Of a stretch of DNA of 64,000 nt, positions 4,417 through 64,000 are shown one piece after another. The position numbers and the translations under genes were made by a program. The stretch lies in contig JAHDYR010000067.1 of NCBI GenBank assembly GCA_019828565.1, positions 588,244-652,243 of the forward strand, given 5' to 3'. Every line of letters starts with the position of its first letter. Positions within the stretch are counted from its first letter, which is position 1. The notes beneath the pieces are model-generated. The model saw nothing but the letters and a program-made list of their open reading frames with translations. It did not search any database and was not told where the DNA came from. This DNA is from Carpediemonas membranifera BICM. Its lineage: Eukaryota > Protista > Fornicata.

Positions 4417-6034
4417 TTATGATTGAGGGGTTGGGTCGACGTCGACCGGGGTGATGTCATGCCACCATTTAGGAGCCTTGCATTTGGCCAATTTAGCCAC
4501 CCCATCCGAATCTCCCACCTTGAACCACTGGCCGGTGGAGTCGCGGAAGCAGAGGGGGTCTTCAACATTAAACGCTGTCGCCTCAATTGGAACCATAGTA
4601 CGATTCTCATCCTCGTAATAGTGGGTGACACCTCGGTCACCCAGACCATCCGATCATAGTCACCCCAGAACCCCTTGACCCTCTCTGGGAACCGGAGCGG
4701 GGTGGATGTGATGCACTTGTCGTCCCTGCGTTTTCCAGGCAGCAGGCCCGACTGGGCGATATGAGGGCGAACTCGACCAGCGAACAGCAGCTGGCGGCCA
4801 CCGAGGAAGACGGTGAAAACAAATGCAGAAGTCATGATCCGGTCGACCCAGAAGGGCAGGTCGACGAAGCGTGTCATATCATCATCGTGCCCGAGTCCCA
4901 GCCGGCCACAATAGTTGCCCCCGCTGATCATCTGCCGATCGCCCATTGAGAGGATGACAGTTGTTGCATTGAGCAGACCTGCATGCATGATGTGATCTGG
5001 GACAAAGCCAGACGGCACTGCTACTGGGTGGAAGAAGTAGTAGTTCTCCCGCTCGACTGGGCCGACGAAGCGCACCGAAGCAGCGCCAGCCATGACAGTG
5101 CCGACCGGAGTGAGGATGAACGTCTGGTAATCCTCTATCGACACAGCAGTCACCATCCTGTGCTTCTCCCAGGGGGGCAGGCTGGCCTCGAGCGCGGCGA
5201 CCTTGAGGCAGGCGGGGAAGGTGAGGCGGGTCGGGTCGTTGAACTCAAATGACTCGAACCCCAGCTGGCCAAACCCGTTCTGCCCCCAGCCCCACAGACC
5301 CTTGGGCGTCCTGGCGATGTGGGTGAACCAGTCGCTGTAGACCTCGAGGGCCCTGGGCATCCTGGCCCTGGTGAGGGCGGTGTGCTTGTCAGTGTCGAGC
5401 ATGAAGAGTCGGCCCATGTACATGCGGTGGTGGTAGCAATATTCGTACTCTGTGAACTGATAGCACTCGCCGTCCTTCTCGGCGATGTTCAGCGTGAAGA
5501 AGAACTTGCGGCAGAGGAACCAGAGGCACTTGGCCTCGGGGGCGAGAGCGTTGCGGATCTTGTCGTGCATCTCGGGATTGTGCGGCCACTCCTCTTGAGC
5601 CTCCTTCAGCACCCTGTCCTCGAGGTCGGGGTTGGCCCCGCCACCCAGCAGACACGCCCACACCGCGCCCTGGTTCAGCGTGTGCAGGGCGACCGGGAGC
5701 TCCTCGCCATCCGCGAGCTCGACGTTCATGGACAGTGGGGGGCCGCTGGTGAGGATCGAGCGGGCGCGGTCGAGGAGGGCTTGCGCGGTTGGTTCGAGAG
5801 GGGGCAGCTTGGAGAGCGTGGCGAGGAGGGATCCGAGAGAAGCGACGCTCGCTGGTGTAGAAGTGCCCTTGTCGTTGTGGATCGAGGGCATCTGCCCGTC
5901 GAAGTGCCTGGAGTAGGCGCACTGGATCAAGGATGGGATGTACCAGAGATGGAGGCCGTCACAACAAGCGAGGCGCGATATGCGGTGATCAGCGCATCTC
6001 TTATGGCAGATGGCGAGGAACTAGCGCTGCTCAT
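4417..6034 (-). pseudogene. RCC1-repeat mosaic family copy A (-1 frameshift near 4631; may be an assembly error)
   Basis: RCC1-type repeats GLWGWGQNGFGQLGF and MISGGNYCGRLGLGHDD. Reads GACACCTCGG here versus GACACCCTCGG in other copies. The family stop is at 4417 and the MPSIH ATG at 5891. Confidence 0.85.
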
Positions 6035-6249
6035 TGGTTTCAGCGCTCAGCTCGGTGGTTGCCAAATTCTGACTGCCGACTCGCCGACCGCCGACGCCAG
6101 CTGGGAGGTCGCGATGTGAGGCATGACCTTGACTAAGTCGGCTGGCACTGTGTGCCAGCCGTGGGCGTGGGTTTCACTCCATCGATACGGCTTCAATCCC
6201 TACGTCGGCATTATCCGGATGGACGCTCTCCATAAAGAACCGCAGCGCT

Positions 6250-7467
6250 TTACATTTCCTCGTCGTCGACCTCCTCGCCGGCCGCCCCGCCCTTCTTCTC
6301 CGTGTTATCCTCAATGGTCTGCCGCACCTTAGCGCACTTATCTTTGAGAACGGCGAGGGCCTTACGAACGATGTCCTCAGGCTCCATGGACCCGATAGAC
6401 TCAACCTTGAAGAGATAGTCGCCCTTGACCTTCAGGAGCTGCACGTGAGTGGCGAGCTCGTCGTCCTGGATGCATTCGCGGCACATGGTACAGCTCGAAG
6501 GGTTGTTGAGCTTGACCTTGTAGAGCTTGTCGCCATCAAGCATAGACTTCGTCTCGATAAGCTTGAACACGGAAGAGGTGTCCGAGCCGGTGGAGGTGCC
6601 GGGGTTGAGGCTCAGAGGACATCTGGTCACAAGATCGTGACGCAACTTGTTCATCGTCTTAACCTGCACCTTTTCAGCCCCACTAAGCTTCTTCACGTTG
6701 ATCTTCTCCTCGCCAAGCATCTCCTTAGAGAGCCTGATGTCGTTCTGTAGTCTATAAACGGCCGTCCCGACCGGAGAGAACTTTGCGTGGTCCCGGCCGA
6801 CGCCCTTGACGCAGTGGAGCTCGAGGTCGAGCGACTGGCCTTGGCACAGCTTCATGATGGGGATATCGCCGTGCACGGGGCCTGGTAGTGGGAGCTCGTT
6901 TCCAGCCTCGTCGTGGGTGAGGCGGTCGTTGTACTGGTGGGACTCGTCACGGTGCCACACGAGGTCCCTGGAGTAGACAATGCCGTTGTCAGGAGTGAGG
7001 ACGCCGTTCTCCATCTTGCAGTCGACCTTGAGTGTGAAAACGATGGTGTTGAGCTCGGTCCCGCTCTCACTTCCGTCGGTGGCGAAGTACTCGAACTGGG
7101 AGGGGTCTAGGCGAAGGGGAACAAGGCCGATACGGTGGGCTAGGACCTCGTCTTGCATGATAGAGGTGTTGTTCTTGATCACGGCCTTCTCGATGGCGAC
7201 AGTGGGCACTTCGGAAATCATAATGCGGCGGAGAGCGTTGGCAATGGAGGGATCAGCGTTAATGAGTTCAAACTCAAGCTCGTTCTCATGCTTGCTGAGG
7301 ATCTTAACAGAAAGCTGCTCGGAGACTTGATTCTCAGGAGTGGAAAGGGAAAAGGCGGTTCCCGAGGTTGTGGCCGTCTTTGTAAGCTGCAAAGAGAATG
7401 GGAAACGTACATTCGAGATTCCGTACTTGGACACTTGCGCAAACTGGTCAGGATCAGCCCGTTCCAT
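6250..7467 (-). CDS. POLR1C: RNA polymerase I/III shared subunit AC40 (RPC40)
   Basis: Motifs SIANALRRIMISEVPTVAIE, DEVLAHRIGLVPL, KGVGRDHAKFSPV, CTMCREC and FKVESIG. Start uncertain; possible in-frame 24-nt intron at 7387-7410. Confidence 0.93.
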   Translation of the reverse strand: MERADPDQFAQVSKYGISNVRFPFSLQLTKTATTSGTAFSLSTPENQVSEQLSVKILSKHENELEFELINADPSIANALRRIMISEVPTVAIEKAVIKNNTSIMQDEVLAHRIGLVPLRLDPSQFEYFATDGSESGTELNTIVFTLKVDCKMENGVLTPDNGIVYSRDLVWHRDESHQYNDRLTHDEAGNELPLPGPVHGDIPIMKLCQGQSLDLELHCVKGVGRDHAKFSPVGTAVYRLQNDIRLSKEMLGEEKINVKKLSGAEKVQVKTMNKLRHDLVTRCPLSLNPGTSTGSDTSSVFKLIETKSMLDGDKLYKVKLNNPSSCTMCRECIQDDELATHVQLLKVKGDYLFKVESIGSMEPEDIVRKALAVLKDKCAKVRQTIEDNTEKKGGAAGEEVDDEEM

Positions 7468-7738: not shown

Positions 7739-7881
7739 ATGTGCTGCAGGATTAGAATTGTTGAGTCCAAAACACACAGTGATCCGAGCAGCATCAGGAT
7801 CGCAGTGTGGTTCATCATACTCTATCAATCGTGCGCAGGATATCACGCGTGCTGCAGCGCGTGCTTGCTCAACTTAGCAAG
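7739..7881 (-). ncRNA. Putative Fanzor omegaRNA scaffold / right end
   Basis: Three hairpins directly after the stop codon: 7864-7881 (CTTGCT/AGCAAG), 7844-7863 (CACGCG/CGCGTG) and 7773-7809 (CACAC..GATCC/GGATC..GTGTG). They are followed by a terminal motif found three times in the window. Position matches known TnpB/Fanzor architecture. Confidence 0.45.
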
Positions 7882-8756: not shown

Positions 8757-9130
8757 CGGAGTTTATTGAGCTGCCTGCATCGATCATTTCTTTTCAGGGT
8801 TCATCAGCTGGCAGCATCCCTCAAAATACAAGAAACCAGCATCATATAACACAAAGCGTCTTTACTACAAGCTACAACCGCTTTCCACCACTAGTGTCTC
8901 TCGCAACAGACGAAGATGACGAAGACAACGACGACATGAGCTTCAGACGCCGGCAATGGACGACAGATGAGCGCGTAACAGACGAGCACAGACGCGAAAG
9001 AAGACAGCAGCGTTCGACACAGACGATGGACGACAGACGACAGACGACGCATCTTTTCGTGCAGACCGACGACTGAAAGCACGACAGACCGATGGCACAG
9101 ACGAGGGCTGAAGTGGGTGAGTGGAGGTAG

Positions 9131-10996: not shown

Positions 10997-11215
10997 GGTC
11001 GACGTCGACGGGTGATGTCCAGCTTTGGGGCGCCTCGCACTCGACTAGCTCATCCACCATTTCGAACCACTGGCTGGTGGGCCGCGAGTGCAATAGCAGT
11101 GCTTTCTCTGCTGCTAACTTCGGAACGTCCTAAAAACGCCGACGCCAGCTGGGAGGTCGGGAGCTGAGGCATGACCATCGCCTGCACTCACGGACACGGG
11201 ATGACGAGAGCTGCC
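10997..11215 (-). pseudogene. Collapsed remnant of an RCC1-family copy
   Basis: 10997-11080 encodes a decayed family C-terminus (SQWFEMVDELVECEAPQSWTSPVDVD). 11137-11215 matches the 5' flank of copies I and J. The gene body is missing. Confidence 0.8.
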
Positions 11216-11324: not shown

Positions 11325-12964
11325 TTATGAATCATACGGGTCGACATCGACGGGAATGATGTCTTCCCACGATTCGGCCACCTCGGACTCGACCAGCTCA
11401 GCCACCCCATCTGACTCACCCACCACCTTGAACCACTGGCCGGTGGAGTCGCGGAATAATTGGATGCAATTGTCATTGATCAATGTTCTATGGCATGCCA
11501 TAGCCTCAAAGGGCACACAGATCTGGTCGTCGTGTTCGTTGTCGCACAAATGAGTGCGGCCCTCGGTCACCCAGACCATCCGATCATAGTCACCCCAGAA
11601 CCCCTTGACCCTCTCTGGGAACCGGAGCGGGGTGGATGTGATGCACTTGTCGTCCCTGCGTTTTCCAGGCAGCAGGCCCGACTGGGCGATATGAGGGCGA
11701 ACTCGACCAGCGAAGAGCAGCTGGCGGCCACCGAGGAAGACGGTGAAAACAAATGCAGAAGTCATGATCCGGTCGACCCAGAAGGGCAGGTCGACGAAGC
11801 GTGTCATATCATCATCGTGCCCGAGTCCCAGCCGGCCACAATAGTTGCCCCCGCTGATCATCTGCCGATCGCCCATTGAGAGGATGACAGTTGTTGCATT
11901 GAGCAGACCTGCATGCATGATGTGATCTGGGACAAAGCCAGACGGCACTGCTACTGGGTGGAAGAAGTAGTAGTTCTCCCGCTCGACTGGGCCGACGAAG
12001 CGCACCGAAGCAGCGCCAGCCATGACAGTGCCGACCGGAGTGAGGATGAACGTCTGGTAATCCTCTATCGACACAGCAGTCACCATCCTGTGCTTCTCCC
12101 AGAGGGGCAGGCTGGCCTCGAGCTCGGCGACCTTGGGGCAGGCGGGGAAGGTGAGGCGGGTCGGGTCGTTGAACTCAAATGACTCGAACCCCAGCTGGCC
12201 AAACCCGTTCTGCCCCCAGCCCCACAGACCCTTGGGCGTCCTGGCGATGTGGGTGAACCAGTCGCTGTAGACCTCGAGGGCCCTGGGCATCCTGGCCCTG
12301 GTGAGGGCGGTGTGCTTGTCAGTGTCGAGCATGAAGAGTCGGCCCATGTACATGTGGTGGTGGTAGCAATATTCGTACTCTGTGAACTGATAGCACTCGC
12401 CGTCCTTCTCGGCGACGTTCAGCGAGAAGAAGAACTTGCGGCAGAGGAACCAGAGGCACTTGGCCTCGGGGGTGAGAGCCTTGCGGATCTTGTCGTGTGT
12501 CTCCCGATCACGAGGCCACCTCATTAGATTATCATCCAGCACCCTGTCCTCGAGGTCGGGGTTGGCCCCGCCGCCCACCAGACACGCCCACACCGCGCCC
12601 TGGTTCAGCGTGTGCATGGCGACCGGGAGCTCCTCGCCATCCGCGAGCTCAACGTTCATGGACAGCGGGGGGCCGCTGGTGAGGATCGAGCGGGCGCGGT
12701 CGAGGAGGGCTTGCGCGGTTGGTTTGAGAGGGGGCAGCTTGGAGAGCGTGGCGAGGAGGGATCCGAGAGAAGCGACGCTCGCTGGTGTAGAAGTGCCCTT
12801 GTCGTTGTGGATCGAGGGCATCTGCCCGTCGAAGTGCCTGGAGTAGGCGCACTGGATCAAGGATGGGATGTACCAGAGATGGAGGCCGTCACAACAAGCG
12901 AGGCGCGATATGCGGAGATAAGTGTGTCTTTGATGCACGTTGGCGAGGAACTAGCGCTGCTCAT
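11325..12964 (-). CDS. RCC1-repeat mosaic family copy B (open from MPSIH ATG at 12821)
   Basis: Same framework as other copies; carries the -1 leader allele. Confidence 0.85.
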
Positions 12965-13197
12965 TGGTCTCAGCGCTCAGCTCGGTGGTTGCCAAATTCT
13001 GACTGCCGACTCGCCGACCGCCGACGCCACTCACCTCGAGGCGCGAGGCACGACCCCGGTAGCCGCAGCTCCAGATGAGTCTGCGCCCAGAGTCGGCGTG
13101 AGTTACATTCGCGTCAGCAATGCCAGACAGAACTGTCTCCCAACCAGCCAAGGCCTCGAGTTGAGTCCACGCCTGACTCCATTCAAATTTACACAGC

Positions 13198-14232
13198 CTA
13201 CTGCCTCTGCTCGAGCGTGCTGACAACATCGCAGACGCGGATATCGTTAGTGTCTCCCGCAAACGCCACAAACCTGCCATTCGGGGCGAAGTCACAGCTG
13301 TAGCTCGCAGAAGGCAGGTCCAACGAACCAAGTATCTCGCCACTGTTTCTATCAAACAGTTTGCACTGGTTACCGTCCGAGCCGCATGCAGCAATGTACT
13401 TCCCGTGCTCCCCGCCGAATGAACAACCGTAGACCATCGTATTCTTGCCGTTCAAGCTACTGGGGTTACCCCAAGCAATGTTCCGCTCAAGCTCGGTGGT
13501 GCGGAGGTCCCAGAGTTGAACTTGGTTCTCAGGACGCCAGGAGCCGGTCAGAACAGTGTTTCCGTCAATATCGACCGAATCTCCGCAGATATGGGGCGAA
13601 TAAATAGATCTGACCGAGTGGTCGGCTCTGAGGTCCCAAACCTGCACCGTGTTGTCCCAGCCGCCAGAGATGAGCAGATTAGGGTCGGTTGGGTGGTAGC
13701 AGAGCGAGAAGACGCGGTTGAAGTGGCCTGACGTGACGTCAGCGAACCCGTCCGTCAGCTCGAGAGTTCTAGTCTTCGTAGCCTCGTCGTAGATGCGAAT
13801 AGTCTGATCTTTTCCTGCCGTGGCAAACTTGCTGCCGTCGTGGGCATATTGCACGGCATAGATCTCGTTGCCCTCCTCCTTGATGGTGTGGAGGCACTTG
13901 CCAGATGTGACATGCCAGTGCTGGACGTAGCCCTCGGCGTTGCCGCTGAGGAGAACATTGCGGGTCTTGGAGCCGGCGACGGGAGAGCGGAAGGCAAGGG
14001 AGGTAGTGGCGAAGGCATTGGCGTCGCCAGCAGCAAACTGGTAGACGAGGCGGCCTGAAGCGGAGTGGAAGATGCGGATTGAGCCATCGCCGCAGCCTGT
14101 AGCGATCATGTGCCCATCTGGGGCGAATTTCACGCAAAAGACCTCACTTTTGGTTCCACTAATGGTCGTACGCTGATAAAGCTCTGGTTCAGAGCCGTTG
14201 GTGATCGTGGTTTCCTTGTTAACCGGTTCCAT
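13198..14232 (-). CDS. WD40-repeat protein
   Basis: Multiple repeats, e.g. GHFNRVFSLCYHP...LISGGWDNTVQVWD. Frame is open to 14331; start uncertain. Confidence 0.9.
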   Translation of the reverse strand: MEPVNKETTITNGSEPELYQRTTISGTKSEVFCVKFAPDGHMIATGCGDGSIRIFHSASGRLVYQFAAGDANAFATTSLAFRSPVAGSKTRNVLLSGNAEGYVQHWHVTSGKCLHTIKEEGNEIYAVQYAHDGSKFATAGKDQTIRIYDEATKTRTLELTDGFADVTSGHFNRVFSLCYHPTDPNLLISGGWDNTVQVWDLRADHSVRSIYSPHICGDSVDIDGNTVLTGSWRPENQVQLWDLRTTELERNIAWGNPSSLNGKNTMVYGCSFGGEHGKYIAACGSDGNQCKLFDRNSGEILGSLDLPSASYSCDFAPNGRFVAFAGDTNDIRVCDVVSTLEQRQ

Positions 14233-17401: not shown

Positions 17402-17781
17402 AGTTGAAGTAAAGGGCGGTTTAAAGCAGGAACGGGGGTCCTTATTATGCCGGCGTCCTTTGTTCCATCACCCTTGTTACCCAGCCGACCAACAGGCATG
17501 CCAACAGATGCGCTTATCTCCACATTCCACGCATCGTTCGCCGATGACGCCACACGGCATCTAATATGGTGCGAGTGAGTGTGGCTATGTGGAGACATGA
17601 GATACGTCGAGCTGGAATTTACGAGCAGCCACTGTCAGAGGGATCCTGACAGGTATCGAAGGAAACGCATTCTGAGTTGTACATAAACTCCTTCTTCTGT
17701 GTAACTCCGCGCTAAGTGGCGTCGGCGGTCGGCGAGTCGGCAGTCAGAATTTGGCAACCACCGAACTGAGCGCTGAAACCA

Positions 17782-19398
17782 ATGAGCAGCGCTAGTTCCT
17801 CGCCAACGTGCATCAAAGACACACTTATCTCCGCATATCGCGCCTCGCTTGTTGTGACGGCCTCCATCTCTGGGGACATCCCATCCTTGATCCAGTGCGC
17901 CTACGTCAGGCACTTCGACGGGCAGATGCCCTCGATCCACAACGACAAGAGCACTTCTGCACCAACCAGCGCCCCTTCTCTCGAATCCCTCATCGCCGCG
18001 CTCTCCAAGCTGCCCCCTCTTGAACCGTCCGCGCAAGCCCTCCTCGACCGCGCCCGCTCGAACCTCACCAGCGGCCCCCCGCTGTCCATGAACATCGAGC
18101 TCGCGGATGGCGAGGAGCTCCCGGTCGCCCTGCACACGCTGAACCAGGGCGCGGTGTGGGCGTGTCTGGTGGGCGGCGGGGCCAACCCCGACCTCGAGGA
18201 CAGGGTGCTGAAGGAGGCTCAAGAGGAGTGGCCGCACAATCCCGAGATGCACGACAAGATCCGCAAGGTCATCGCCCCCGAGGCCAAGTGCCTCTGGTTC
18301 CTCTGCCGCAAGTTCTTCTTCACGCTGAACATCGCCGAGAAGGACGGCGAGTGCTATCAGTTCACAGAGTACGAATATTGCTACCACCACCGCATGTACA
18401 TGGGCCGACTCTTCATGCTCGACACTGACAAGCACACCGCCCTCACCAGGGCCAGGATGCCCAGGGCCCTCGAGGTCTACAGCGACTGGTTCACCCACAT
18501 CGCCAGGACGCCCAAGGGTCTGTGGGGCTGGGGGCAGAACGGGTTTGGCCAGCTGGGGTTCGAGTCATTTGAGTTCAACGACCCGACCCGCCTCACCTTC
18601 CCCGCCTGCCCCAAGGTCGCCGCGCTCGAGGCCAGCCTGCCCCCCTGGGAGAAGCACAGGATGGTGACTGCTGTGTCGATAGAGGATTACCAGACGTTCA
18701 TCCTCACTCCGGTCGGCACTGTCATGGCTGGATATGAGGCAAGATGGTTTACCGGCCGTGTCGAGCGGGAGAACAGACACCGCTTCCACCCAGTCGCTGT
18801 GCCATCTGGCTTTGTCCCAGATCACATCATGCATGTGGGTCCGTTTAATGCAACGACTGTCATCCTCTCAATGGGCGATCGGCAGATGATCAGCGGGGGC
18901 AACTATTGTGGCCGGCTGGGACTCGGGCACGATGATGAGATGTCTGGCTTCGTCGATCTGCCCTTTGGGGTCGACCGGATCATCACTTCTGCAGATGAAT
19001 TCACCGTCTTCCTCGGTGGCCGCCAGCTGCTGTTCGCTGGTCGAGTTCGCCCTCATATCGCCCAGTCGGGCCTGCTGCCTGGAAAACGCAGGGACTACAA
19101 GTGCCTCACAGTCACCCCGCTCCGGTTCCCAGAGAGGGTTAAGCGGTTCTTCAGCGCCTTTAGTCGGATGATCTGGGTCACTGAGGGTGTCACCCACTAT
19201 TACGAGGATGAGAATCGTACTATAGTCCCCATTGAGGCGATAGCGTTCAACAAATGCCCCCTCCGCTTCTGCGACTCCACCGGCCAGTGGTTCAAGGTGG
19301 GAGATTCGGATGGGGTGGCTAAATTGGCCAAATGCAAGGCTCCTAAATGGTGGCATGACATCACCCCGGTCGACGTCGACCCAACCCCTCAATCATAA
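17782..19398 (+). CDS. RCC1-repeat mosaic family copy C (intact, 538 aa)
   Basis: Uninterrupted ORF from the first ATG; RCC1-type repeats. Confidence 0.9.
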   Translation: MSSASSSPTCIKDTLISAYRASLVVTASISGDIPSLIQCAYVRHFDGQMPSIHNDKSTSAPTSAPSLESLIAALSKLPPLEPSAQALLDRARSNLTSGPPLSMNIELADGEELPVALHTLNQGAVWACLVGGGANPDLEDRVLKEAQEEWPHNPEMHDKIRKVIAPEAKCLWFLCRKFFFTLNIAEKDGECYQFTEYEYCYHHRMYMGRLFMLDTDKHTALTRARMPRALEVYSDWFTHIARTPKGLWGWGQNGFGQLGFESFEFNDPTRLTFPACPKVAALEASLPPWEKHRMVTAVSIEDYQTFILTPVGTVMAGYEARWFTGRVERENRHRFHPVAVPSGFVPDHIMHVGPFNATTVILSMGDRQMISGGNYCGRLGLGHDDEMSGFVDLPFGVDRIITSADEFTVFLGGRQLLFAGRVRPHIAQSGLLPGKRRDYKCLTVTPLRFPERVKRFFSAFSRMIWVTEGVTHYYEDENRTIVPIEAIAFNKCPLRFCDSTGQWFKVGDSDGVAKLAKCKAPKWWHDITPVDVDPTPQS

Positions 19399-26942: not shown

Positions 26943-28421
26943 TTATGATTGAGGGGTAGGGGCGACGTCGACCGGGGTGATGTCATGCCACCATTTAGGA
27001 GCCTTGCATTTGGCCAATTTAGCCACCCCATCCGAATCTCCCACCTTGAACCACTGGCCAGTTGAGTCACGGAAGCGGAGGGGGCATTTGTTGAACGCTA
27101 TCGCCTCAATGGGGACTATAGTACGATTCTCATCCTCGTAATAGTGGGTGACACCCTCAGTGACCCAGATCATCCGACTAAAGGCGCTGAAGAACCGCTT
27201 AACTCTCTCTGGGAACCGGAGCGGGGTGGCTGTGAGGCACTTGTCGCGTTCGCTGAAACCAGGCAGCAGGCCCGACTGGGTGATATGAGGGCGAACTCGA
27301 CCAGCGAACAGCAGCTGGCGGCCACCGAGGAAGACGGTGAAAACAAATGCAGAAGTCATGATCCGGTCGACCCAGAAGGGCAGGTCGACGAAGCGTGTCA
27401 TATCATCATCGTGCCCGAGCCCCAACCGGCCACAATAGTTGCCCCCGCTGATCATCTGCCGATCGCCCATTGAGAGGATGACAGTTGTTGCATTGAGCAG
27501 ACCTGCATGCATGATGTGATCTGGGACAAAGCCAGACGGCACTGCTACTGGGTGGAAGAAGTAGTAGTTCTCCCGCTCGACTGGGCCGACAAAGCGCTCC
27601 GAAGCAGCGCCAGCCATGACAGTGCCGACCGGAGTGAGTATGAACGTCGCATCTCCATTCATCGACACACCAGTCACCATCCTGTGCTTCTCCCAGAGGG
27701 GCAGGCTGGCCTCGAGCGCGGCGATGTTGGGGCAGGCGGGGAAGGTGAGGCGGGTCGGGTCGACAAATTGATCAAATGCTGACCTGAACCCAAGCTGGCT
27801 ACGTCCGTTAGTGCCCCAGCCCCACAGACCCTTGGGCGTCCTGGCGATGTGGCTAATCCTGTTGCTGTGGACCTCGATGGCCCTGGGCATCCTGGCCCTG
27901 GTGAGGGCGGTGTGGTGTCTCGTGTCGAGCATGAAGAGTCGGCCCATGTACATGTGGTGGTGGTAGCAATATTCGTACTCTGTGAACTGATAGCACTCGC
28001 CGTCCTTCTCGGCGATGTTCAGCGTGAAGAAGAACTTGCGGCAGAGGAACCAGAGGCACTTGGCCTCGGGGGAGAAAGCGTTGCGGATCTTGTCGTGTAT
28101 CTCGGTCCTGCGTGGCTCCTCCCCTCGAGCCTCCTTCAGCACTCTGTCCTCGAAGTCTGGGTTGGCCCCGCCGCCCACCAGACACGCCCACACCGCGCCC
28201 TGGTTCAGCGTGTGCATGGCGACCGGGAGCTCCTGCCCCGCCACCAGCTCGACGTTCATGGACAGTGGGGGGCCGCTGGTGAGGATCGAGCGGGCGCGGT
28301 CGAGGAGGGCTTGCGCGGTTGGTTTGAGAGGGGGGAGCTTGGAGAGCGCGGCGAGGAGGGATTCGAGAGAAGGGGCGCTGGTTGGTGCAGAAGTGCTCTT
28401 GTTGTTGTGGATCGAGGGCAT
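26943..28421 (-). CDS. RCC1-repeat mosaic family copy D (492 aa from MPSIH; leader to 28564 disrupted)
   Basis: Family framework; -1 leader allele plus a TAG immediately before the MPSIH ATG. Confidence 0.85.
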   Translation of the reverse strand: MPSIHNNKSTSAPTSAPSLESLLAALSKLPPLKPTAQALLDRARSILTSGPPLSMNVELVAGQELPVAMHTLNQGAVWACLVGGGANPDFEDRVLKEARGEEPRRTEIHDKIRNAFSPEAKCLWFLCRKFFFTLNIAEKDGECYQFTEYEYCYHHHMYMGRLFMLDTRHHTALTRARMPRAIEVHSNRISHIARTPKGLWGWGTNGRSQLGFRSAFDQFVDPTRLTFPACPNIAALEASLPLWEKHRMVTGVSMNGDATFILTPVGTVMAGAASERFVGPVERENYYFFHPVAVPSGFVPDHIMHAGLLNATTVILSMGDRQMISGGNYCGRLGLGHDDDMTRFVDLPFWVDRIMTSAFVFTVFLGGRQLLFAGRVRPHITQSGLLPGFSERDKCLTATPLRFPERVKRFFSAFSRMIWVTEGVTHYYEDENRTIVPIEAIAFNKCPLRFRDSTGQWFKVGDSDGVAKLAKCKAPKWWHDITPVDVAPTPQS

Positions 28422-28985
28422 CTACCCGTCGAAGTGCCTGGAGTAGGCGCACTGGATCAAGGATGGGATGTACCAGAGATGGAGGCCGTCACAACAAGCG
28501 AGGCGCGATATGCGGTGATCAGCGCATCTCTTATGGCAGATGGCGAGGAACTAGCGCTGCTCATTGGTTTCAGCGCTCAGCTCGGTGACTGCCGACTCGC
28601 CGACCGTCGACGGCACTCACCACGGAGTCGCATAGTAGCTGTGAGGCGCGACCACAGCGGCGACAGATCTCACCACATCCACCCGTCCAGCGCTCTTCCG
28701 AAACGTTTCACCGTCATTAGCCCGACACTCAGCCAGCGGTTGGAGTGCAAGTTCAGGATCCAGCGCGCTCTGCTGCAGCTGCTTGGCGATAATGGATTCA
28801 TTTTCAGGCTAGCCACTTAAATTTATGTAAATGTATATGTCGAATGTATATGTCGGGTCGAGTGTGTCGACTTTGCCAGGTACGAAGCTCTCCAGAGCTA
28901 AGAATGGATCAGAAAATTCAAACAAGTCCAGTTCTCTTGTCAGTTCCCCCTCATATTTTTTTTCCATTTACCTCGCAGACCCACT

Positions 28986-29838: not shown

Positions 29839-31454
29839 TTATGAATCATACGGTTCGACATCGATGGGAATGATGTCTTCCCACGATTCGGCCACCTCGC
29901 ACTCGACCAGCTCAGCCACCCCATCTGCCTCACCCACCACCTTGAACCACTGGCCAGTTGAGTCGCAGAAGCGGAGGGGGTATCCATTGACCGCTATCGC
30001 CTCAATGGGGACTATAGTACGATTCTCATCCTCGTAATAGTGGGTGACACCCTCAGTGACCCAGATCATCCGACTAAAGGCGCTGAAGAACCGCTTAACC
30101 CTCTCTGGGAACCGGAGCGGGGTGGGTGTGAGGCACTTGTAGTCCCTGCGTTTTCCAGGCAGCAGGCCCGACTGGGCGATATGAGGGCGAACTCGACCAG
30201 CGAACAGCAGCTGGCGGCCACCGAGGAAGACGGTGAAAACAAATGCAGAAGTCATGATCCGGTCGACCCAGAAGGGCAGGTCAACGAAGCCAGACATCCC
30301 ATCATCGTGCCCGAGCCCCAACCGGCCACAATAGTTGCCCCCGCTGATCATCTGCCGATCGCCCATTGAGAGGATGACAGTTGTTGCATTGAGCAGACCT
30401 GCATGCATGATGTGATCTGGGACAAAGCCAGACGGCACTGCTACTGGGTGGAAGAAGTAGTAGTTCTCCCGCTCGACTGGGCCGACGAAGCGCTCCGAAG
30501 CAGCGCCAGCCATGACAGTGCCGACCGGAGTGAGGATGAACGTCTGATATTCATATATCGACACATCAGTCACCATCCTGTGCTTCTCCCAGAGGGGCAG
30601 GCTGGCCTCGAGCGCGGCGACCTTGGGGCAGGCGGGGAAGGTGAGGCGGGTCGGGTCGACGAACCCAGATGACTGGAACCCCAGCTGGCCAAACCCGTTC
30701 TGCCCCCAGCCCCACAGACCCTTGGGCGTCCTGGCGATGTGGCTAATCCTGTTGCTGTAGACCTCGAGGGCCCTGGGCATCCTGACCCTGGTGAGGGCGG
30801 TGTGGTTGGCAGTGTCGAGCATGAAGAGTCGGCCCATGTACATGCGATGGTGATAAGAGTTACCAGAGAATCTGCTCTGATAGCACTCGCCGTCCTTCTC
30901 GGCGACGTTCAGCGTGAAGAAGAACTTGCGGCAGAGGAACCAGAGGCACTTGGCCTCGGGGGCGATGACCTTGCGGATCTTGTCGTGCATCTCGGGATTG
31001 TGCGGCCACTCCTCTTGAGCCTCCTTCAGCACCCTGTCCTCGAGGTCGGGGTTGGCCCCGCCGCCCACCAGACACGCCCACACCGCGCCCTGGTTCAGCG
31101 TGTGCATGGCGACCGGGAGCTCCTCGCCATCCGCGAGCTCGATGTTCATGGACAGCGGGGGGCCGCTGGTGAGGTTCGAGCGGGCGCGGTCGAGGAGGGC
31201 TTGCGCGGACGGTTCAAGAGGGGGCAGCTTGGAGAGCGCGGCGAGGAGGGATTCGAGAGAAGGGGCGCTCGCTGGTATAGAAGTGCTCTTGTTGTTGTGG
31301 ATCGAGGGCATCTGCTTCTTGAAGTGCCTGGAGTAGGCGCACTGGATCAAGGATGGGATGTACCAGAAATGGAGGCCGTTACAACAAGCGAGGCGCGATA
31401 TGCGGTGATCAGCGCATCTTTGATGGCAGATGGCGAGGAACTAGCGCTGCTCAT
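29839..31454 (-). CDS. RCC1-repeat mosaic family copy E (open from MPSIH ATG at 31311)
   Basis: Family framework; -1 leader allele. Confidence 0.85.
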
Positions 31455-39825: not shown

Positions 39826-41465
39826 ATGAGCAGCGCTAGTTCCTCGCCATCTGCCATCAGAGATGCGCTGATCACCGCATATCGCGCCTCGCTTGTTGTG
39901 ACGGCCTCCATCTCTGGTACATCCCATCCTTGATCCAGTGCGCCTACTCCAGGCACTTCGACGGGCAGATGCCCTCGATCCACAACGACAAGAGCACTTC
40001 TGCACCAACCAGCGCCCCTTCTCTCGAATCCCTCCTCGCCGCGCTCTCCAAGCTGCCCCCTCTCGAGCCATCCGCGCAAGCCCTCCTCGACCGCGCCCGC
40101 TCGATCCTCACCAGCGGCCCCCCGCTGTCCATGAACATCGAGCTCGCGGATGGCGAGGAGCTCCCGGTCGCCATGCACACGCTGAACCAGGGCGCGGTGT
40201 GGGCGTGTCTGGTGGGCGGCGGGGCCAACCCCGACCTCGAGGACAGGGTGCTGAAGGAGGCTCAAGAGGAGTGGCCGCACAATCCCGAGATGCACGACAA
40301 GATCCGCAAGGTCATCGCCCCCGAGGCCAAGTGCCTCTGGTTCCTCTGCCGCAAGTTCTTCTTCACGCTGAACGTCGCCGAGAAGGACGGCGAGTGCTAT
40401 CAGTTCACAGAGTACGAATATTGCTACCACCACCGCATGTACATGGGTCGACTCTTCATGCTCGACACGAGACACCACACCGCCCTCACCAGGGCCAGGA
40501 TGCCCAGGGCCCTCGAGGTCTACAGCAACAGGATTAGCCACATCGCCAGGACGCCCAAGGGCATGTGGGGCTGGGGCACTAGCGGACGTAGCCAGCTTGG
40601 GTTCCAGTCATTTAAGTTCAACGACCCGACCCGCCTCACCTTCCCCGCCTGCCCCAAGGTCGCCGCGCTCGAGGCCAGCCTGCCCCCCTGGGAGAAGCAC
40701 AGGATGGTGACTGATGTGTCGATATATGAATATCAGACGTTCATACTCACTCCGGTCGGCACTGTCATGGCGGGCAACAAGGCGAATTGGTTCATAGGCG
40801 AAGCCGAGAGGGGCAATAGACGTCTGTTCACCCCAGTAGCAGTGCCGTCTGGCTTTGTCCCAGATCACATCATGCATGTGGGTCCGTTTAATGCAGCGAC
40901 TGTCATCCTCTCAATGGGCGATCGGCAGATGATCAGCGGGGGCAACTATTGTGGCCGGCTGGGACTCGGGCACGATGATGATATGACACGCTTCGTCGAC
41001 CTGCCCTTCTGGGTCGACCGGATCATGACTTCTGCATTTGTTTTCACCGTCTTCCTCGGTGGCCGCCAGCTGCTCTTCGCTGGTCGAGTTCGCCCTCATA
41101 TCGCCCAGTCGGGCCTGCTGCCTGGAAAACGCAGGGACGACAAGTGCATCACATCCACCCCGCTCCGGTTCCCAGAGAGGGTCAAGGGGTTCTGGGGTGA
41201 CTATGATCGGATGGTCTGGGTGACCGAGGGCCGCACTCATTTGTGCGACAACGAACACGACGACCAGATCTGTGTGCCCTTTGAGGCTATGGCATGCCAT
41301 AGAACATTGATCAATGACAATTGCATCCAATTATTCCGCGACTCCACCGGCCAGTGGTTCAAGGTGGTGGGTGAGTCAGATGGGGTGGCTGAGCTGGTCG
41401 AGTGCGAGGTGGCCGAATCGTGGGAAGACATCATTCCCATCGATGTCGAACCGTATGATTCATAA
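39826..41465 (+). CDS. RCC1-repeat mosaic family copy G (open from MPSIH ATG at 39969)
   Basis: Family framework; -1 leader allele. Confidence 0.85.
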
Positions 41466-45846: not shown

Positions 45847-47269
45847 TTATGATTGAGGGCTTGGGTCGACACTGACGGGAATGATGTCTTCCCGCCTTAT
45901 GGGCGCCTCGCACTCGACGAGTTCAGCCACCCCATCTGACTCGCCCACCACCTTGAACCACTGGCCAGTTGAGTCGCAGAAGCGGAGGGGGTCTTCAACA
46001 TTGAACGCTGTCGCCTCAATTGGAACCATGGTAAGATTCCCACGGTGGCAGTAGTGGGTGACACCCTCGGTCACCCAGACCATCCGATCATATTCACCCC
46101 AGAACCCCTTGACCCTCTCTGGGAACCGGAGCGGGGTGGCTGTGAGGCACTTGTCGCGTTCGCTGAAACCAGGCAGCAGGCCCGACTGGGCGATATGAAA
46201 GGGAACTTCGCCGGCGAAGAGCAGCTGGCGGCCGCTGAGGAAGACGGTGAAAAAACGAGTCTCTGAAGTGATGATCCGGTCGACCCTGAAGGGCAGGTCA
46301 ACGAAGCCAGACATCCCATCATCGTGCCCGAGCCCCAGCTGGCCATAATCGTTTCTCCCACTGATCATCTGCCGATCGCCCATTGAGAGGATGACAGTTG
46401 TTGCATTGAGCAGACCTGCATGCATGATGTGATCTGGGACAAAGCCAGACGGCACTGCTACTGGGTTGAATAGTTTTCTGTTGTCCTCATCGGCTTCGCC
46501 TGTGAACCAATTCGCCTTGTTGCCCGCCATGACAGTGCCGGCTGGAGTGAGGATGAACGTCTGATATTCATATATCGACACAGCAGTCACCATCCTGTGC
46601 TTCTCCCAGGGGGGCAGGCTGGCCTCGAGCGCGGCGATGTTGGGGCAGGAGGGGAAGTTGAGGCGGGTTGGGTTGACAAAAAGATTACTTGCCGACTTGA
46701 ACCCCAGCTGACCCTCTTCGTTAGTGCCCCAGCCCCACAGACCCTTGGGCGTCCTGGCGATGTGGGTCCATGTGTTGCTGTAGACCTCGAGGGCCCTGGG
46801 CATCCTGGCCCTGGTGAGGGCGGTGTGGTGTCTCGTGTCGAGCATGAAGAGTCGGCCCATGTACATGTGGTGGTGGTAGCATCTGTCGTGCCCAGGACGC
46901 TGATAGCACTCGCCGTCCTTCTCGGCGACGTTCAGCGAGAAGAAGAACTTGCGGCAGAGGAACCAGAGGCACTTGGCCTCAGGGGCGAGAGCCTTGCGGA
47001 TCTTGTCGTGCATCCTGGTAGTGTGCGGCCACTCCTCTTGAGCCTCCTCCAGCACCCTGTCCTCGAGGTCGGGGTTGGCCCCGCCACCCACCAGACACGC
47101 CCACACCGCGCCCTGGTTCAGCGTGTGCAGGGCGACCGGGAGCTCCTGCCCCGCCACCAGCTCGACGTTCATGGACAGCGGGGGGCCGCTGGTGAGGTTC
47201 GAGCGAGGCGCGATATGCGGAGATAAGTGTGTCTTTGATGCATGTTGGCGAGGAAATAACGCTGCTCAT
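45847..47269 (-). CDS. RCC1-repeat mosaic family copy H (~210-bp 5' internal deletion; open from MNVEL at 47172)
   Basis: The junction GGTTCGAGCGAGGCGCGATATG near 47200 fuses two normally distant family segments. Confidence 0.8.
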
Positions 47270-47334: not shown

Positions 47335-47646
47335 CTCACCTCGAGGCGCGAGGCACGACCCCGGTAGCCGCAGCTCCAGATGAGTCTGCGCCCAGAGTCG
47401 GCGTGAGTTACATTCGCGTCAGCAATGCCAGACAGAACTGTCTCCCAACCAGCCAAGGCCTCGAGTTGAGTCCACGCCTGACTCCATTCAAATTTACACA
47501 GCCTACTGCCTCTGCTCGAGCGTGCTGACAACATCGCAGACGCGGATATCGTTAGTGTCTCCCGCAAACGCCACAAACCTGCCATTCGGGGCGAAGTCAC
47601 AGCTGTAGCTCGCAGAAGGCAGGTCCAACGAACCAAGGATCTCGCC
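47335..47646 (-). repeat. Duplicate of 13030-13341, including the 3' ~144 bp of the WD40 gene
   Basis: Near-identical sequence at a constant offset of 34305. Confidence 0.92.
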
Positions 47647-50829: not shown

Positions 50830-52447
50830 ATGAGCAGCGCTAGTTCCTCGCCATCTGCCATCAGAGATGCGCTGATCACCGCATATCGCGCCTCGCTTGT
50901 TGTGACGGCCTCCATCTCTGGTACATCCCATCCTTGATCCAGTGCGCCTACTCCAGGCACTTCAAGAAGCAGATGCCCTCGATCCACAACGACAAGGGCA
51001 CTTCTACACCAACCAGCGCCCCTTCTCTCGAATCCCTCATCGCCGCGCTCTCCAAGCTGCCCCCTCTTGAACCGTCCGCGCAAGCCCTCCTCGACCGCGC
51101 CCGCTCGATCCTCACCAGCGGCCCCCCGCTGTCCATGAACGTCGAGCTCGCGGACGGCGAGGAGCTCCCGGTCGCCCTGCACACGCTGAACCAGGGCGCG
51201 GTGTGGGCGTGTCTGCTGGGTGGCGGGGCCAACCCCGACCTCGAGGACAGGGTGCTGAAGGATAATCTAATGAGGCGGCCTCGTGATCGGGAGACACACG
51301 ACAAGATCCGCAACGCTCTCACCCCCGAGGCCAAGTGCCTCTGGTTCCTCTGCCGCAAGTTCTTCTTCACGTTTAATGTCGCAGAGAAGGACGGCGAGTG
51401 CTGTCAGGGCACTGGGTACAAGAGCTACTACCACCACCGCATGTACGTGGGCCGCCTCTTCATGCTCGGCACTGCCAACCACACCGCCCTCACCAGGGTC
51501 AGGATGCCCAGGGCCCTCGAGGTCTACAGCAACAGGATTAGCCACATCGCCAGGACGCCCAAGGGCATGTGGGGCTGGGGCACTAGCGGACGTAGCCAGC
51601 TTGGGTTCCAGTCATTTAAGTTCAACGACCCGACCGCCTCACCTTCCCCGCCTGCCCCAAGGTCGCCGAGCTCGAGGCCAGCCTGCCCCCCTGGGAGAAG
51701 CACGGGATGGTGACTGGTGTATCAATAGAGAGATGTCAGACGTTCATCCTCACTCCGGTCGGCACTGTCATGGCTGGCTACAATGCAGGCTGGTTCAGAG
51801 GCCCTATCGAGGAGAACAGACACCGCTTCCACCCAGTCGCTGTGCCATCTGGCTTTGTCCCAGATCACATCATGCATGTGGGTCCGTTTAATGCAGCGAC
51901 TGTCATCCTCTCAATGGGCGATCGGCAGATGATCAGTGGGAGAAACGATTATGGCCAGCTGGGACTCGGGCACGATGATGATATGACACGCTTCGGCGAC
52001 CTGCCCTTCAGGGTCGACCGGATCATGATTTCGCAGACAAGTTATTTTAGCATCTTCCCCAGCGGCCGCCAGCTGCTGTTCGCTGGTCGAGTTCGCCCTC
52101 ATATCGCCCAGTCGGGCCTGCTGCCTGGTTTCAGCGAACGCGACAAGTGCATCACAGCCACCCCGCTCCGGTTCCCAGAGAGGGTCAAGGGGTTCTTCAG
52201 CGCCTTTAGTCGGATGATCTGGGTCACTGAGGGTGTCACCCACTATTACGAGGATGAGAATCGTACTATAGTCCCCATTGAGGCGATAGCGGTCAATGGA
52301 TACCCCCTCCGCTTCTGCGACTCAACTGGCCAGTGGTTCAAGGCGGTGGGTGAGTCAGATGGGGTGGCTGAGCTGGTCGAGTGCGAGGTGGCCGAATCGT
52401 GGGAAGACATCATTCCCGTCGATTTCGACCAAAGCCCTCAATCATAA
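50830..52447 (+). pseudogene. RCC1-repeat mosaic family copy I (-1 frameshift near 51633; may be an assembly error)
   Basis: Reads GACCCGACCGCC versus GACCCGACCCGCC in other copies; split into ORFs 50934-51713 and 51707-52447. Confidence 0.85.
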
Positions 52448-56760: not shown

Positions 56761-56833
56761 GAAGCTCTGGAGAAGACGATCTCCCTACCGACTTAAGACG
56801 TGAGTAGGAGGGAGACAGGGCGGTGTTGAGCAG
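56761..56833. repeat. ~73-bp dispersed hairpin-forming repeat, copy 2
   Basis: Near-identical to 2748-2820. Confidence 0.85.
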
Positions 56834-59178: not shown

Positions 59179-60795
59179 ATGAGCAGCGCTAGCTCCTCGC
59201 CATCTGCCATCAGAGATGCGCTGATCACCGCATTCCGCGCCTCGCTTGTTGTGACGGCCTCCATCTCCGGGGACATCCCCTCGTTGATCCAGTGCGCCTA
59301 CTCCAGGCACTTCAAGAAGCAGATGCCCTCGATTCACAAAGCAGATAGCACTTATACACCAACCAGCGCCCCTTCTCTCGAATCCCTCATCGCCGCGCTC
59401 TCCAAGCTGCCCCCTCTTGAACCGTCCGCGCAAGCCCTCCTCGACCGCGCCCGCTCGATCCTCACCAGCGGCCCCCCGCTGTCCATGAACGTCGAGCTCG
59501 CGGACGGCGAGGAGCTCCCGGTCGCCATGCACACGCTGAACCAGGGCGCGGTGTGGGCGTGTCTGCTGGGCGGCGGGGCCAACCCCGACCTCGAGGACAG
59601 AGTGCTGAAGGATAATCTAATGAGGCGGCCTCGTGATCGGGAGACACACGACAAGATCCGCAACGCTCTCACCCCCGAGGCCAAGTGCCTCTGGTTCCTC
59701 TGCCGCAAGTTCTTCTTCACGTTTAATGTCGCAGAGAAGGACGGCGAGTGCTGTCAGGGCACTGGGTACAAGAGCTACTACCACCACCGCATGTACGTGG
59801 GCCGCCTCTTCATGCTCGGCACTGCCAACCACACCGCCCTCACCAGGGCCAGGATGCCCAGGGCCCTCGAGGTCTACAGCAACAGGATTAGCCACATCGC
59901 CAGGACGCCCAAGGGCATGTGGGGCTGGGGCACTAGCGGACGTAGCCAGCTTGGGTTCCAGTCATTTGAGTTCAACGACCCGACCCGCCTCACCTTCCCC
60001 GCCTGCCCCAAGGTCGCCGCGCTCGAGGCCAGCCTGCCCCCCTGGGAGAAGCACAGGATGGTGACTGCTGTGTCGATATATGAACTTCAGACGTTCATCC
60101 TCACTCTGGTCGGCACTGTCATGGCGGGCTACAAGGCGAATTGGTTCATAGGCGAAGCCGATGAGGACAACAGAAAACTATTCAACCCAGTAGCAGTGCC
60201 CACTGGCTTTGTCCCAGATCACATCATGCATGTGGGTCCGTTTAATGCAACGACTGTCATCCTCTCAATGGGCGATCGGCAGATGATCAGTGGGAGAAAC
60301 GATTATGGCCAGCTGGGGCTCGGGCACGATGATGGGATGTCTGGCTTCGTTGACCTGCCCTTCTGGGTCGACCGGATCATGACTTCTGCAGATGAATTCA
60401 ACGTTTTCCTCGGTGGCCGCCAGCTGCTCTTCGCTGGTCGAGTTCGCCCTCATATCACCCAGTCGGGCCTGCTGCCTGGTTTCAGCGAACGCGACAAGTG
60501 CCTCACAGCCACCCCGCTCCGGTTCCCAGAGAGGGTCAAGGGGTTCTGGGGTGACTATGATCGGATGGTCTGGGTCACTGAGGGTGTCACCCACTATTAC
60601 GAGGATGAGAATCCAACTATGGTCCCCATTGAGGCGACAGCGGTCAATGGATACCCCCTCCGCTTCTGCGACTCAACTGGCCAGTGGTTCAAGGTGGTGG
60701 GTGAGTCAGATGGGGTGGCTGAGCTGGTCGAGTGCGAGGTGGCCGAATCGTGGGAAGACATCATTCCCGTCGATGTCGACCCGTATGATTCATAA
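59179..60795 (+). CDS. RCC1-repeat mosaic family copy J (intact, 538 aa)
   Basis: Uninterrupted ORF from the first ATG. Confidence 0.9.
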   Translation: MSSASSSPSAIRDALITAFRASLVVTASISGDIPSLIQCAYSRHFKKQMPSIHKADSTYTPTSAPSLESLIAALSKLPPLEPSAQALLDRARSILTSGPPLSMNVELADGEELPVAMHTLNQGAVWACLLGGGANPDLEDRVLKDNLMRRPRDRETHDKIRNALTPEAKCLWFLCRKFFFTFNVAEKDGECCQGTGYKSYYHHRMYVGRLFMLGTANHTALTRARMPRALEVYSNRISHIARTPKGMWGWGTSGRSQLGFQSFEFNDPTRLTFPACPKVAALEASLPPWEKHRMVTAVSIYELQTFILTLVGTVMAGYKANWFIGEADEDNRKLFNPVAVPTGFVPDHIMHVGPFNATTVILSMGDRQMISGRNDYGQLGLGHDDGMSGFVDLPFWVDRIMTSADEFNVFLGGRQLLFAGRVRPHITQSGLLPGFSERDKCLTATPLRFPERVKGFWGDYDRMVWVTEGVTHYYEDENPTMVPIEATAVNGYPLRFCDSTGQWFKVVGESDGVAELVECEVAESWEDIIPVDVDPYDS

Positions 60796-62803: not shown

Positions 62804-63241
62804 TTGTTGCTTCAGTTTTTGCTTGGGTTGCTGGTGAGCTTGGTAAGTTGCGGTTGCACCTCGCGTCTTCCTCTATTCTTGCTGAATGTTGGTGGTGTGT
62901 GCTCTTCCCGGTAGTCGGCACTCATGTAGATTCTTCAGTAAACTCTTAGATACGCTTCTCGATGACGGCGTTGAGGCGACTTGGCTCTGTCTCGACGCTC
63001 GTTCCATCGCGTAAGATGGGGCAAGTGGGGCAACCAAGGCAAGGAGCATCCCTCGCTGATATGGAAATGGATCAGAAAGGTGTTGTGGCATTTGAAAGTG
63101 CGTCCCTCCACCGATCTTTCGACACACACCGCTGGCGATCATGTGGTGAAGTCAGCCATCGATCATTCTGTAGTCGATCAGCCTTGATCATTATCGGCAT
63201 CAACGCGGGAAGTGATCCGGAGGCGACGAGTATCACACAAT

Positions 63242-64000
63242 TTATGAATCATTCGGGTCGACGTCGACGGGAATGATGTCTCTCGGCCTTCTGGGCGCCT
63301 CGCACTCGACCAGCTCAGCCACCCCATCTGACTCACCCACCTTGAACCACTGGCCAGTTGAGCCGCAGAAGCGGAGGCGGCATTTGTTGACCGCTGTCGC
63401 CTCAATTGGAACCATGGTAAGATTCCCACGGTGGCAGTAGTGGGTGACACCCTCGGTCACCCAGACCATCCGATCATATTCACCCCAGAACCCCTTGACC
63501 CTCTCTGGGAACCAGAGCGGGGTGGATGTGAGGCACTTGTCGCGTTCGCTGAAACCAGGCAGCAGGCCCGACTGGGCGATATGAAAGGGAACTTCGCCGG
63601 CGAAGAGCAGCTGGCGGCCGCTGAGGAAGACGGTGAAAAAACGAGTCTCTGAAGTCATGATCCGGTCGACCCAGAAGGGCAGGTCGACGAAGCGTGTCAT
63701 ATCATCATCGTGCCCGAGCCCCAACCGGCCACAATAGTTGCCCCCGCTGATCATCTGCCGATCGCCCATTGAGAGGATGACAGTTGTTGCATTGAGCAGA
63801 CCTGCATGCATGATGTGATCTGGGACAAAGCCAGACGGCACTGCTACTGGGGTGAACGGACGTCTATTGCCCCTCTCGGCTTCGCCTATGAACCAATTCG
63901 CCTTGTTGCCCGCCATGACAGTGCCGACCGGAGTGAGTATGAACGTCTGATATTCATATATCGACACAGCAGTCACCATCCTGTGCTTCTCCCAGGGGGG
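63242..64000 (-). CDS. RCC1-repeat mosaic family copy K (3' half; 5' part outside the window)
   Basis: Family framework from PPWEKHRMVT to the stop. Confidence 0.85.
   Translation of the reverse strand, partial: PPWEKHRMVTAVSIYEYQTFILTPVGTVMAGNKANWFIGEAERGNRRPFTPVAVPSGFVPDHIMHAGLLNATTVILSMGDRQMISGGNYCGRLGLGHDDDMTRFVDLPFWVDRIMTSETRFFTVFLSGRQLLFAGEVPFHIAQSGLLPGFSERDKCLTSTPLWFPERVKGFWGEYDRMVWVTEGVTHYCHRGNLTMVPIEATAVNKCRLRFCGSTGQWFKVGESDGVAELVECEAPRRPRDIIPVDVDPNDS

Follow-up and report, generated by a model that had tools for sequence, protein, structure and literature searches.

We analysed a window of 64,000 nucleotides from the genome of Carpediemonas membranifera (C67:588244-652243; assembly of 24.24 Mb in 69 contigs) and found that it carries 11 paralogs, A to K, of a multigene family whose variable loops have been reassorted between copies. 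Ectopic gene conversion very probably shaped this family, and in the predicted structure the variation is located on one face of an RCC1-like β-propeller. The explanation that on balance fits best as a whole is a birth-and-death family diversified by ectopic conversion and encoding variable binders with a constant docking part. The paralogs are intronless, single-exon genes of ~1.62 kb, which together occupy 26% of the window and are placed singly among ordinary genes on both strands. DNA analyses covered the window and 30 loci of the genome; the set consisted of 31 close copies, namely the 11 window copies and 20 more from contigs C67, C13 and C26. Copy C served as the reference for the structural model and for residue numbering. 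All features are listed in Table 1.

An earlier note, made without database searches, had described an invariant framework interrupted by about 17 variable slots with 2-6 alleles each. The slots are indeed discrete, and their number was revised to 22, with 2-5 alleles in the window and 2-13 over the 31 copies. The framework is not invariant: its blocks are only 94.5% identical (78% in the slots), contain 77 informative sites and are recombinant by themselves. All seven allele lists of that note agree with the six-frame translation and the DNA alignment. After DRVL, one allele is shared by A, C, E and G, another by B, F, I and J, and a third is found in D, whereas H is a hybrid within the slot. 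The alleles after DGEC group A, B, C, D and G, then F and H, then I and J, with E on its own; those after VTEG group A, C, D, E, I and J, then B and G, then F, H and K. Two pairs of slots occur in all four combinations: AGLL/VGPF with DMTR/xMSG in A, E, G and C, and KRRD/FSER with FWG/FFS in A, C, H and D, where the slots are 20 codons apart. In the slots, sequences of one allele differ on average by 0-7% at the DNA level and those of different alleles by 22-60%. Every window copy has its own combination over the 22 slots compared; the sole combination shared among the 31 copies belongs to two C26 copies, a segmental duplicate.

The pairwise homoplasy index (PHI) strongly supported recombination, with a value of 0.31 for the alignment of the window copies compared to 0.60 ± 0.006 after permutation (p<0.0005) and of 0.34 compared to 0.58 for the framework only. 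Of the pairs of informative sites, 4% are incompatible at distances of ≤5 bp and ~65% at distances above 200 bp. Significant identical runs were present in 45 of 45 copy pairs; for C67 copies, the longest run per pair measures 102 bp in the median and at most 505 bp (B/G). When the gene was divided into quarters, each quarter rejected the trees of the others (approximately unbiased (AU) tests, p≤0.0015), which is in line with the claim that no simple duplication tree can produce the family. Among the 19 C67 copies, those that lie farther apart are less similar (Mantel rho -0.62, p=0.0002). Copy identity decreases from 0.89 at <15 kb to 0.84 at >60 kb and to 0.80 towards the C13 cluster, and slot sharing from 0.48 at <15 kb to 0.23 at >60 kb and 0.05 between contigs; the orientation of the C67 copies had no effect on similarity. 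Both the decay and the independence of orientation are predicted by a homology- and proximity-dependent ectopic conversion. The proposal of diversification by ectopic gene conversion is thus supported by PHI, identical runs, AU tests and distance decay.

Conversion would begin and end in conserved stretches, so that each divergent loop moves as a block; this may account for the cassette-like look of the genes. Import of loop alleles from distant paralogs was mostly not seen, as the carriers of loop alleles are at least 72% identical to C except for two alleles. Mutagenesis of the diversity-generating retroelement type was rejected, because all six substitution classes are common in the slots without an adenine bias. 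No reverse transcriptase was found among the window genes scanned.

A structural model of copy C (AlphaFold2, pLDDT 88) comprises a four-helix bundle (residues 1-99), a helical segment (residues 113-189) and a seven-bladed RCC1-like propeller. In structure searches the top 40 Foldseek and the top 9 VIA matches were RCC1-like. RCC1-type folds matched with E~1e-9 in Foldseek and Z 14, at 10-16% identity and root-mean-square deviations of 5-9 Å. The assignment to RCC1-repeat proteins therefore stands with respect to the fold; the RCC1 part, however, is restricted to residues ~190-532 and mostly scores below the Pfam cut-offs (E 1e-3 to 4e-6; PF25390 far below its cut-off, PF00415 above it only in J).

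The four strands of each meander are joined by AB turns and CD loops at one end and by BC and DA connections at the other; strands were assigned from the DSSP order without viewing coordinates. Among the close copies, conservation is lower in every one of the 14 AB/CD zones than in any of the 13 BC/DA zones (proportion of nonsynonymous differences 0.22 versus 0.04, p=1e-5), a pattern kept over 74 members. Mapped onto the predicted structure, the variable residues of the slots are limited to one propeller face. The ratio of nonsynonymous to synonymous substitution rates (dN/dS) is 0.88 (0.68-1.13) for the AB/CD face, 0.33 (0.19-0.56) for the BC/DA face and 0.35 for the strands, and the opposite face has only about half the dS of the loops. 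Hypervariable positions are enriched threefold in Tyr and twofold in Asp, Asn and Lys. The face corresponding to the variable side binds ligands in RCC1-type proteins, e.g. UVR8 and BLIP-II. The proteins are probably cytosolic, as had been suggested: copy C has no hydrophobic segment (best 19-residue Kyte-Doolittle mean 1.19), and this mean exceeds 1.9 in only 5 of 148 members, in none of them N-terminally.

The copies arose by duplication at the DNA level; their ends are ragged and include fragments of adjacent genes. Between pairs of copies, flank homology ends 43 to >1500 bp upstream and 0-270 bp downstream, and upstream of the ~65-bp leader it stops at a different point in each pair. Copy H carries the upstream flank of B including the last 47 codons of its WD40 neighbour, and a copy at C67:560 kb carries the 420-bp upstream flank of E with the end of the neighbouring LRR gene. 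The 209-nt deletion in H joins microhomologies and is common to the copy at C67:675 kb. An origin as transposon or retrocopy was rejected in view of the variable ends, the captured upstream gene fragments and the lack of terminal repeats or poly(A). Unlike the family copies, two short elements found in this genome (~102 bp and ~133 bp) have fixed ends. The leader upstream of A, E, F, I, J and K (e.g. window 6034-6128) contains an upstream open reading frame of ~25 codons, which starts with MPH and stops immediately ahead of the main start codon.

Reading frames that are open from the first ATG exist only in C, F, J and K, leaving 7 of the 11 window copies broken; among all close copies 11 of 31 are open. 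The -1 frameshift at codon 31 is common to A, B, D, E, G and I on different backgrounds, which argues that conversion spreads lesions too. The second stop of D at codon 48 argues for this lesion being real. The frame is open from Met49 in B, D, E and G and from Met103 in H, and 8 of the 19 C67 copies combine a lesion in the four-helix bundle with an open downstream frame. Bundle-less forms starting at Met49 or Met103 may be tolerated or used. Lesions are concentrated in this bundle (A, B, D, E, G, H, I and the copy at C67:675 kb). Several other 1-nt lesions lie in homopolymers and are possibly nanopore sequencing errors. Rescue of the codon-31 frameshift by an intron was considered: by local translation only, the GT created there has no frame-restoring acceptor common to the six copies, and weak upstream donors are possible. 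Indel alleles are in-frame in 25 and frameshifting in 16 cases, and common framework variants have a dN/dS of 0.33, singletons one of 0.63; together these values indicate long-term purifying selection with ongoing decay.

Two sets of sequenced contigs, X1 and X2 (nearly the same data, single pieces never spanning a whole copy), resemble RNA, with genes covered and intergenic bins near zero. About 500 of their records fall on the stretch from E over the LRR gene to F, 126 of them at 99%+ identity, and the family is represented in these RNA-like sets. Many sites of the stretch show only alleles other than those of E or F, and at codon 31 of E only the in-frame allele is seen. The LRR gene itself (window 31765-33114, - strand) has a 96%-identical paralog at C68:557753-559108, and both versions occur in the RNA-like contigs.

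In the N-terminal part, the four-helix bundle has no significant structural relative (the best Z of 6.1 is background), and Pfam or fold searches gave no HeLo, MLKL, RPW8 or CC domain match. No P-loop domain (NACHT, NB-ARC) was found in the Pfam scans or the model. The segment between bundle and propeller was compared with the F-box pattern L-P-x-E-(I/L)-L-x-x-I-F ... L-x-x-V-C-K-x-W. In F-box proteins this pattern is expected immediately ahead of the binding domain; the helices here comprise residues 122-131, 166-173 and 176-189. The first helix is F-box-like in the most divergent members (P0189: ILSLSDELLWAIF; P0140: IYNLPDGVFWTIF), and by eye the pattern is clearest in P0189, P0140 and P0190. 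The family-wide motif WFLC[RK]KF resembles the VCKxW end of the F-box, and the variable insert before it, which is shortest in P0190, P0199 and P0222, holds the DRVL slot. The fold lists of the N-terminal part are filled by residues 3-99. The genome contains two Skp1 matches (C26:615291, C13:109459) and five cullin matches while no F-box in it scores above the Pfam cut-off, which leaves room for divergent adaptors. We tentatively consider residues 113-180 a candidate degenerate F-box, i.e. an adaptor of Skp1-cullin-F-box (SCF) ligases, with somewhat less than even confidence. The only near-threshold canonical F-box match of the genome lies at C32:83861-83986 (- strand) in a frame of 1285 amino acids.

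A profile of the F-box-like segment detected 345 candidate loci in the genome; 150 of 150 scored loci match, on ~30 contigs. Alignments of 250+ residues with 20-90% identity were obtained for at least 189 annotated proteins, and the same positions are variable across family members of 25-90% identity. All full-length matches checked were from C. membranifera. No relative outside the species was found among 5.8 billion proteins, among 20 distant matches checked by name, or in metagenomes, the ESM Atlas and viral structures; generic RCC1-repeat proteins match the propeller only. A literature search gave no paper naming Carpediemonas together with RCC1. Judged from these searches, the family appears to be species-specific and previously undescribed. 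Some NCBI models (P0024, P0039, P0052, P0105, P0119, P0122, P0178, P0184) include fusions to unrelated domains (Vps37, prenyltransferase, PARG, TPR, chromo), which are probably mis-joined neighbours.

Table 1. Family copies and associated features in the window (positions from the first nucleotide of the window).
Feature	Position	Strand	Remarks
Copy A	4417..6034	-	-1 at codon 31; private 1-nt deletion near codon 468
Collapsed twelfth copy (remnant)	10997..11202	-	5' leader (11137-11202) fused to decayed 3' end (10997-11058); coding middle gone
Copy B	11325..12964	-	-1 at codon 31; open from Met49
Upstream flank of B	13031..13341	-	includes last 47 codons of adjoining WD40 gene; source of flank upstream of H
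Conserved leader, ~65 bp (shown for C)	17717..17781	+	common to nearly all close copies
Copy C	17782..19398	+	intact, 538 amino acids
C, four-helix bundle (residues 1-99)	17782..18078	+	best structural match Z 6.1, ferritin-like, not significant
C, conserved three-helix F-box-like segment with variable insert (residues 113-180)	18118..18321	+	pattern only; library tests negative
Slot N4 (DRVL slot), inside F-box-like segment	18211-18252	+	variable insert
C, seven-bladed RCC1-like β-propeller (residues 190-532)	18349..19377	+	predicted fold
Propeller variable slots (AB turns, CD loops), first half	18352-18381, 18421-18438, 18481-18495, 18535-18579, 18667-18696, 18730-18786, 18832-18855	+	copy C
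Propeller variable slots (AB turns, CD loops), second half	18895-18969, 18982-19017, 19039-19116, 19141-19182, 19189-19230, 19240-19269, 19300-19317	+	copy C
Copy D	26943..28564	-	-1 at codon 31; TAG at codon 48; open from Met49
Copy E	29839..31454	-	-1 at codon 31; open from Met49
Copy F	33266..34885	-	intact, 539 amino acids
Copy G	39826..41465	+	-1 at codon 31; open from Met49; 505-bp tract identical to B
Copy H	45847..47269	-	209-nt microhomology-flanked deletion in four-helix bundle; open from Met103
Captured flank upstream of H	47336..47646	-	99% identical to B flank; copy of WD40 gene 3' end at 47503-47646
Copy I	50830..52447	+	-1 at codon 31; private 1-nt deletion near codon 269
Copy J	59179..60795	+	intact, 538 amino acids
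Copy K, 3' half (extends past window)	63242..64000	-	intact, 538 amino acids, in locus L014

Among the genes between the paralogs are those for an RNA polymerase Rpb3-family subunit, MCM10, eIF5B, a USP7-like protein, a cyclin, COP-gamma and Not3. The eIF5B gene contains a 28-nt GT-AG intron with a GTACGT donor (window 15489-15516), an example of the very short introns of this genome. The ~102-bp dispersed element (window 2740-2841; partial copy 56761-56833) has fixed ends, an internal hairpin, 98-100% identity genome-wide and 140 candidates; it is apparently a young element resembling miniature inverted-repeat transposable elements or short interspersed elements. The second dispersed element of ~133 bp (window 2360-2492 and 8886-9018; 95-98% identical, 185 candidates) is adjoined by a third short repeat (window 2317-2364 / 7746-7793).

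We lean towards the view that the copies form a selected variable-binding repertoire. Several observations weigh against it. The dN/dS of the loops between alleles is 0.77 (confidence interval 0.63-0.99) and never significantly above 1, and at independently chosen variable sites it is 0.9-1.2 with confidence intervals that span 1. Polar loops at the surface would yield the same bias in composition. When read from the first ATG, about two thirds of the 31 close copies have a broken frame, with some homopolymer lesions perhaps being nanopore errors. The RNA-like contigs do not show end-to-end expression of any copy, and the data come from a single isolate. For the docking part, PF00646/PF12937 matched 0 of 113 members and 0 of 20 trimmed segments, no F-box match was obtained in Pfam, PDB sequences or fold searches, and the only sequence matches of the F-box-like segment were ankyrin-like GAdP stretches. 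With a loop dN/dS of ~0.8-0.9 and not above 1, relaxed constraint stays compatible with the data, and a role in defence or recognition is what we infer. Relaxed constraint is central to a model of genomic drift, in which a recombination-prone genome locally amplifies a dispensable gene, the loops of one face are unconstrained and shuffled neutrally, and most copies have no specific function. Besides the loop values, this model would account for the many broken copies with lesions spread by conversion and for the dN/dS of 0.63 in rare framework variants, and lineage-specific plant F-box genes show the same pattern (PMC3030570). Relaxed constraint should, however, hit both faces, yet the 14 and 13 zones separate completely; the doubled dS of the loops is as expected of long-kept alleles, and the variable positions stay the same over 25-90% identity. 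We regard drift as a rather unlikely alternative.

The copies could also be sensors similar to nucleotide-binding leucine-rich-repeat (NLR) proteins, with the propeller face detecting and the four-helix bundle acting as effector by membrane damage or oligomerisation, and with bundle-less copies as sensors or decoys. The bundle at residues 1-99 and the eight C67 copies with a bundle lesion but an open downstream frame would suit such a role, but without NB-ARC or NACHT, without a HeLo, MLKL, RPW8 or CC match and with a best Z at background level we consider it improbable. Discrete alleles and many pseudogenes are likewise expected of a programmed cassette system, in which silent donors feed one expression site as for VSG, pilE/pilS and vlsE. 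As a mechanism, this analogy of the earlier note was not supported: the copies are full-length peers, each with its own leader, exchange looks reciprocal among them and runs through framework and flanks with a decay over distance, lesions move like loop alleles, and the RNA-like contigs, which do not assign transcripts to single loci, hold many alleles per site. A border motif and an adenine bias are lacking, and neither a donor archive nor an expression site nor a signal at cassette borders turned up in the copies and loci examined. We consider such a system very improbable. The same applies to an assembly artefact, i.e. chimeras from short-read polishing of repeats. The Nanopore assembly was polished with Pilon/Bowtie2, several 1-nt lesions lie in homopolymers, and the codon-31 deletion is absent from the RNA-like contig placed there; however, each 1.6-kb copy lies within unique flanks at 83x long reads, alleles differ by in-frame indels of up to 21 nt, and 99%+ identity is reached by 126 contigs. 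Polishing does not produce a decay with distance, captured flanks or the second stop of D in an out-of-frame segment. The worry about a chimeric assembly is thus unlikely to be justified, while haplotypes on single reads were neither proved nor refuted.

For the selected repertoire of variable binders we propose the following scenario. C. membranifera is a haploid, free-living, anaerobic fornicate flagellate, whose assembly derives from 83x Nanopore and 150x Illumina reads; it lacks non-homologous end joining (NHEJ) and Rad51A, retains alternative end joining and has been proposed to depend on homologous recombination (PMC8516963). The species-specific multigene family probably evolves by birth and death and frequent ectopic gene conversion, and repair that depends on homologous recombination in place of NHEJ would supply the exchanges among copies, a causal tie that we infer. 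Purifying selection maintains the BC/DA face, the fold and the helices in front of the propeller, whereas the AB/CD face carries old, divergent loop alleles. Less firmly, the proteins would act as binders in the cytosol, with one face variable and a docking part kept constant; the latter would most likely be a degenerate F-box that links captured targets, e.g. viral or ingested-bacterial proteins, to Skp1-cullin ligases. A few hundred degenerate F-box adaptors with loop-recombined RCC1-like faces could then constitute an intracellular, ubiquitin-ligase-based system of variable recognition, fed by the proposed recombination-dependent replication and with broken copies as allele reservoirs; we consider this full version doubtful.

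Hardly anything is known of the recognition repertoires that free-living protists possess, and ~4% of the 8,300 genes of this species may be one undescribed family varying on a single protein face. The family is also a direct read-out of ectopic recombination with respect to tract length, distance decay and flank capture. It makes the proposed replication via homologous recombination without an origin recognition complex testable from sequence and passaged clones.

With RCC1, UVR8, the HERC2 RLD, WBSCR16 and BLIP-II the family shares the seven-bladed RCC1-type fold; it differs from them in being multicopy and hypervariable, with 10-16% identity and Pfam scores below cut-off. In VSG, pilE/pilS and vlsE, variable segments between conserved blocks are moved by conversion, likewise here. 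In contrast to these, the Carpediemonas proteins have no signal peptide or surface anchor, and we found neither a direction from archive to expression site nor a dedicated initiation signal; the family is very probably not a programmed cassette system. To our knowledge, loop-wise reassortment this dense is not a hallmark of lineage-specific F-box families. The F-box expansions of plants (PMC3030570) and Caenorhabditis (PMC8665587) also combine a constant N-terminal docking module with a variable C-terminal binding domain and comprise hundreds of species-specific copies with many pseudogenes, and yeast Saf1 (10.1101/636902) demonstrates that the candidate architecture of F-box and RCC1 exists. 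Here, the candidate F-box is suggested by pattern only and contains a variable insert, and the proteins have a four-helix bundle in addition.

The HNWD genes of Podospora (het-d, het-e; PMC1805685) are likewise a multigene family with pseudogenes, exchange of propeller DNA within and between loci and one variable face. The Carpediemonas family, however, lacks NACHT and HET domains and has ~345 loci instead of 10. It exchanges position-matched tracts between whole paralogs, whereas HNWD genes swap near-identical repeat units, and it varies in whole loops with indels rather than in four codons, with a loop dN/dS of 0.77-1.2 that is not significantly above 1. Plant NLR clusters such as RPP8 (PMC6771003) are similar in their mosaics from intergenic conversion, deep shared polymorphism and birth and death. 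They differ in having LRRs and NB-ARC, in place of which the present family has an RCC1-like propeller, with copies interleaved singly with housekeeping genes in both orientations in a haploid, free-living protist. The family thus resembles the fungal HNWD genes and plant NLR clusters in combining conversion with one variable face but belongs to neither; new here are the distance decay, the flank capture, the shared lesions and the partial F-box test.

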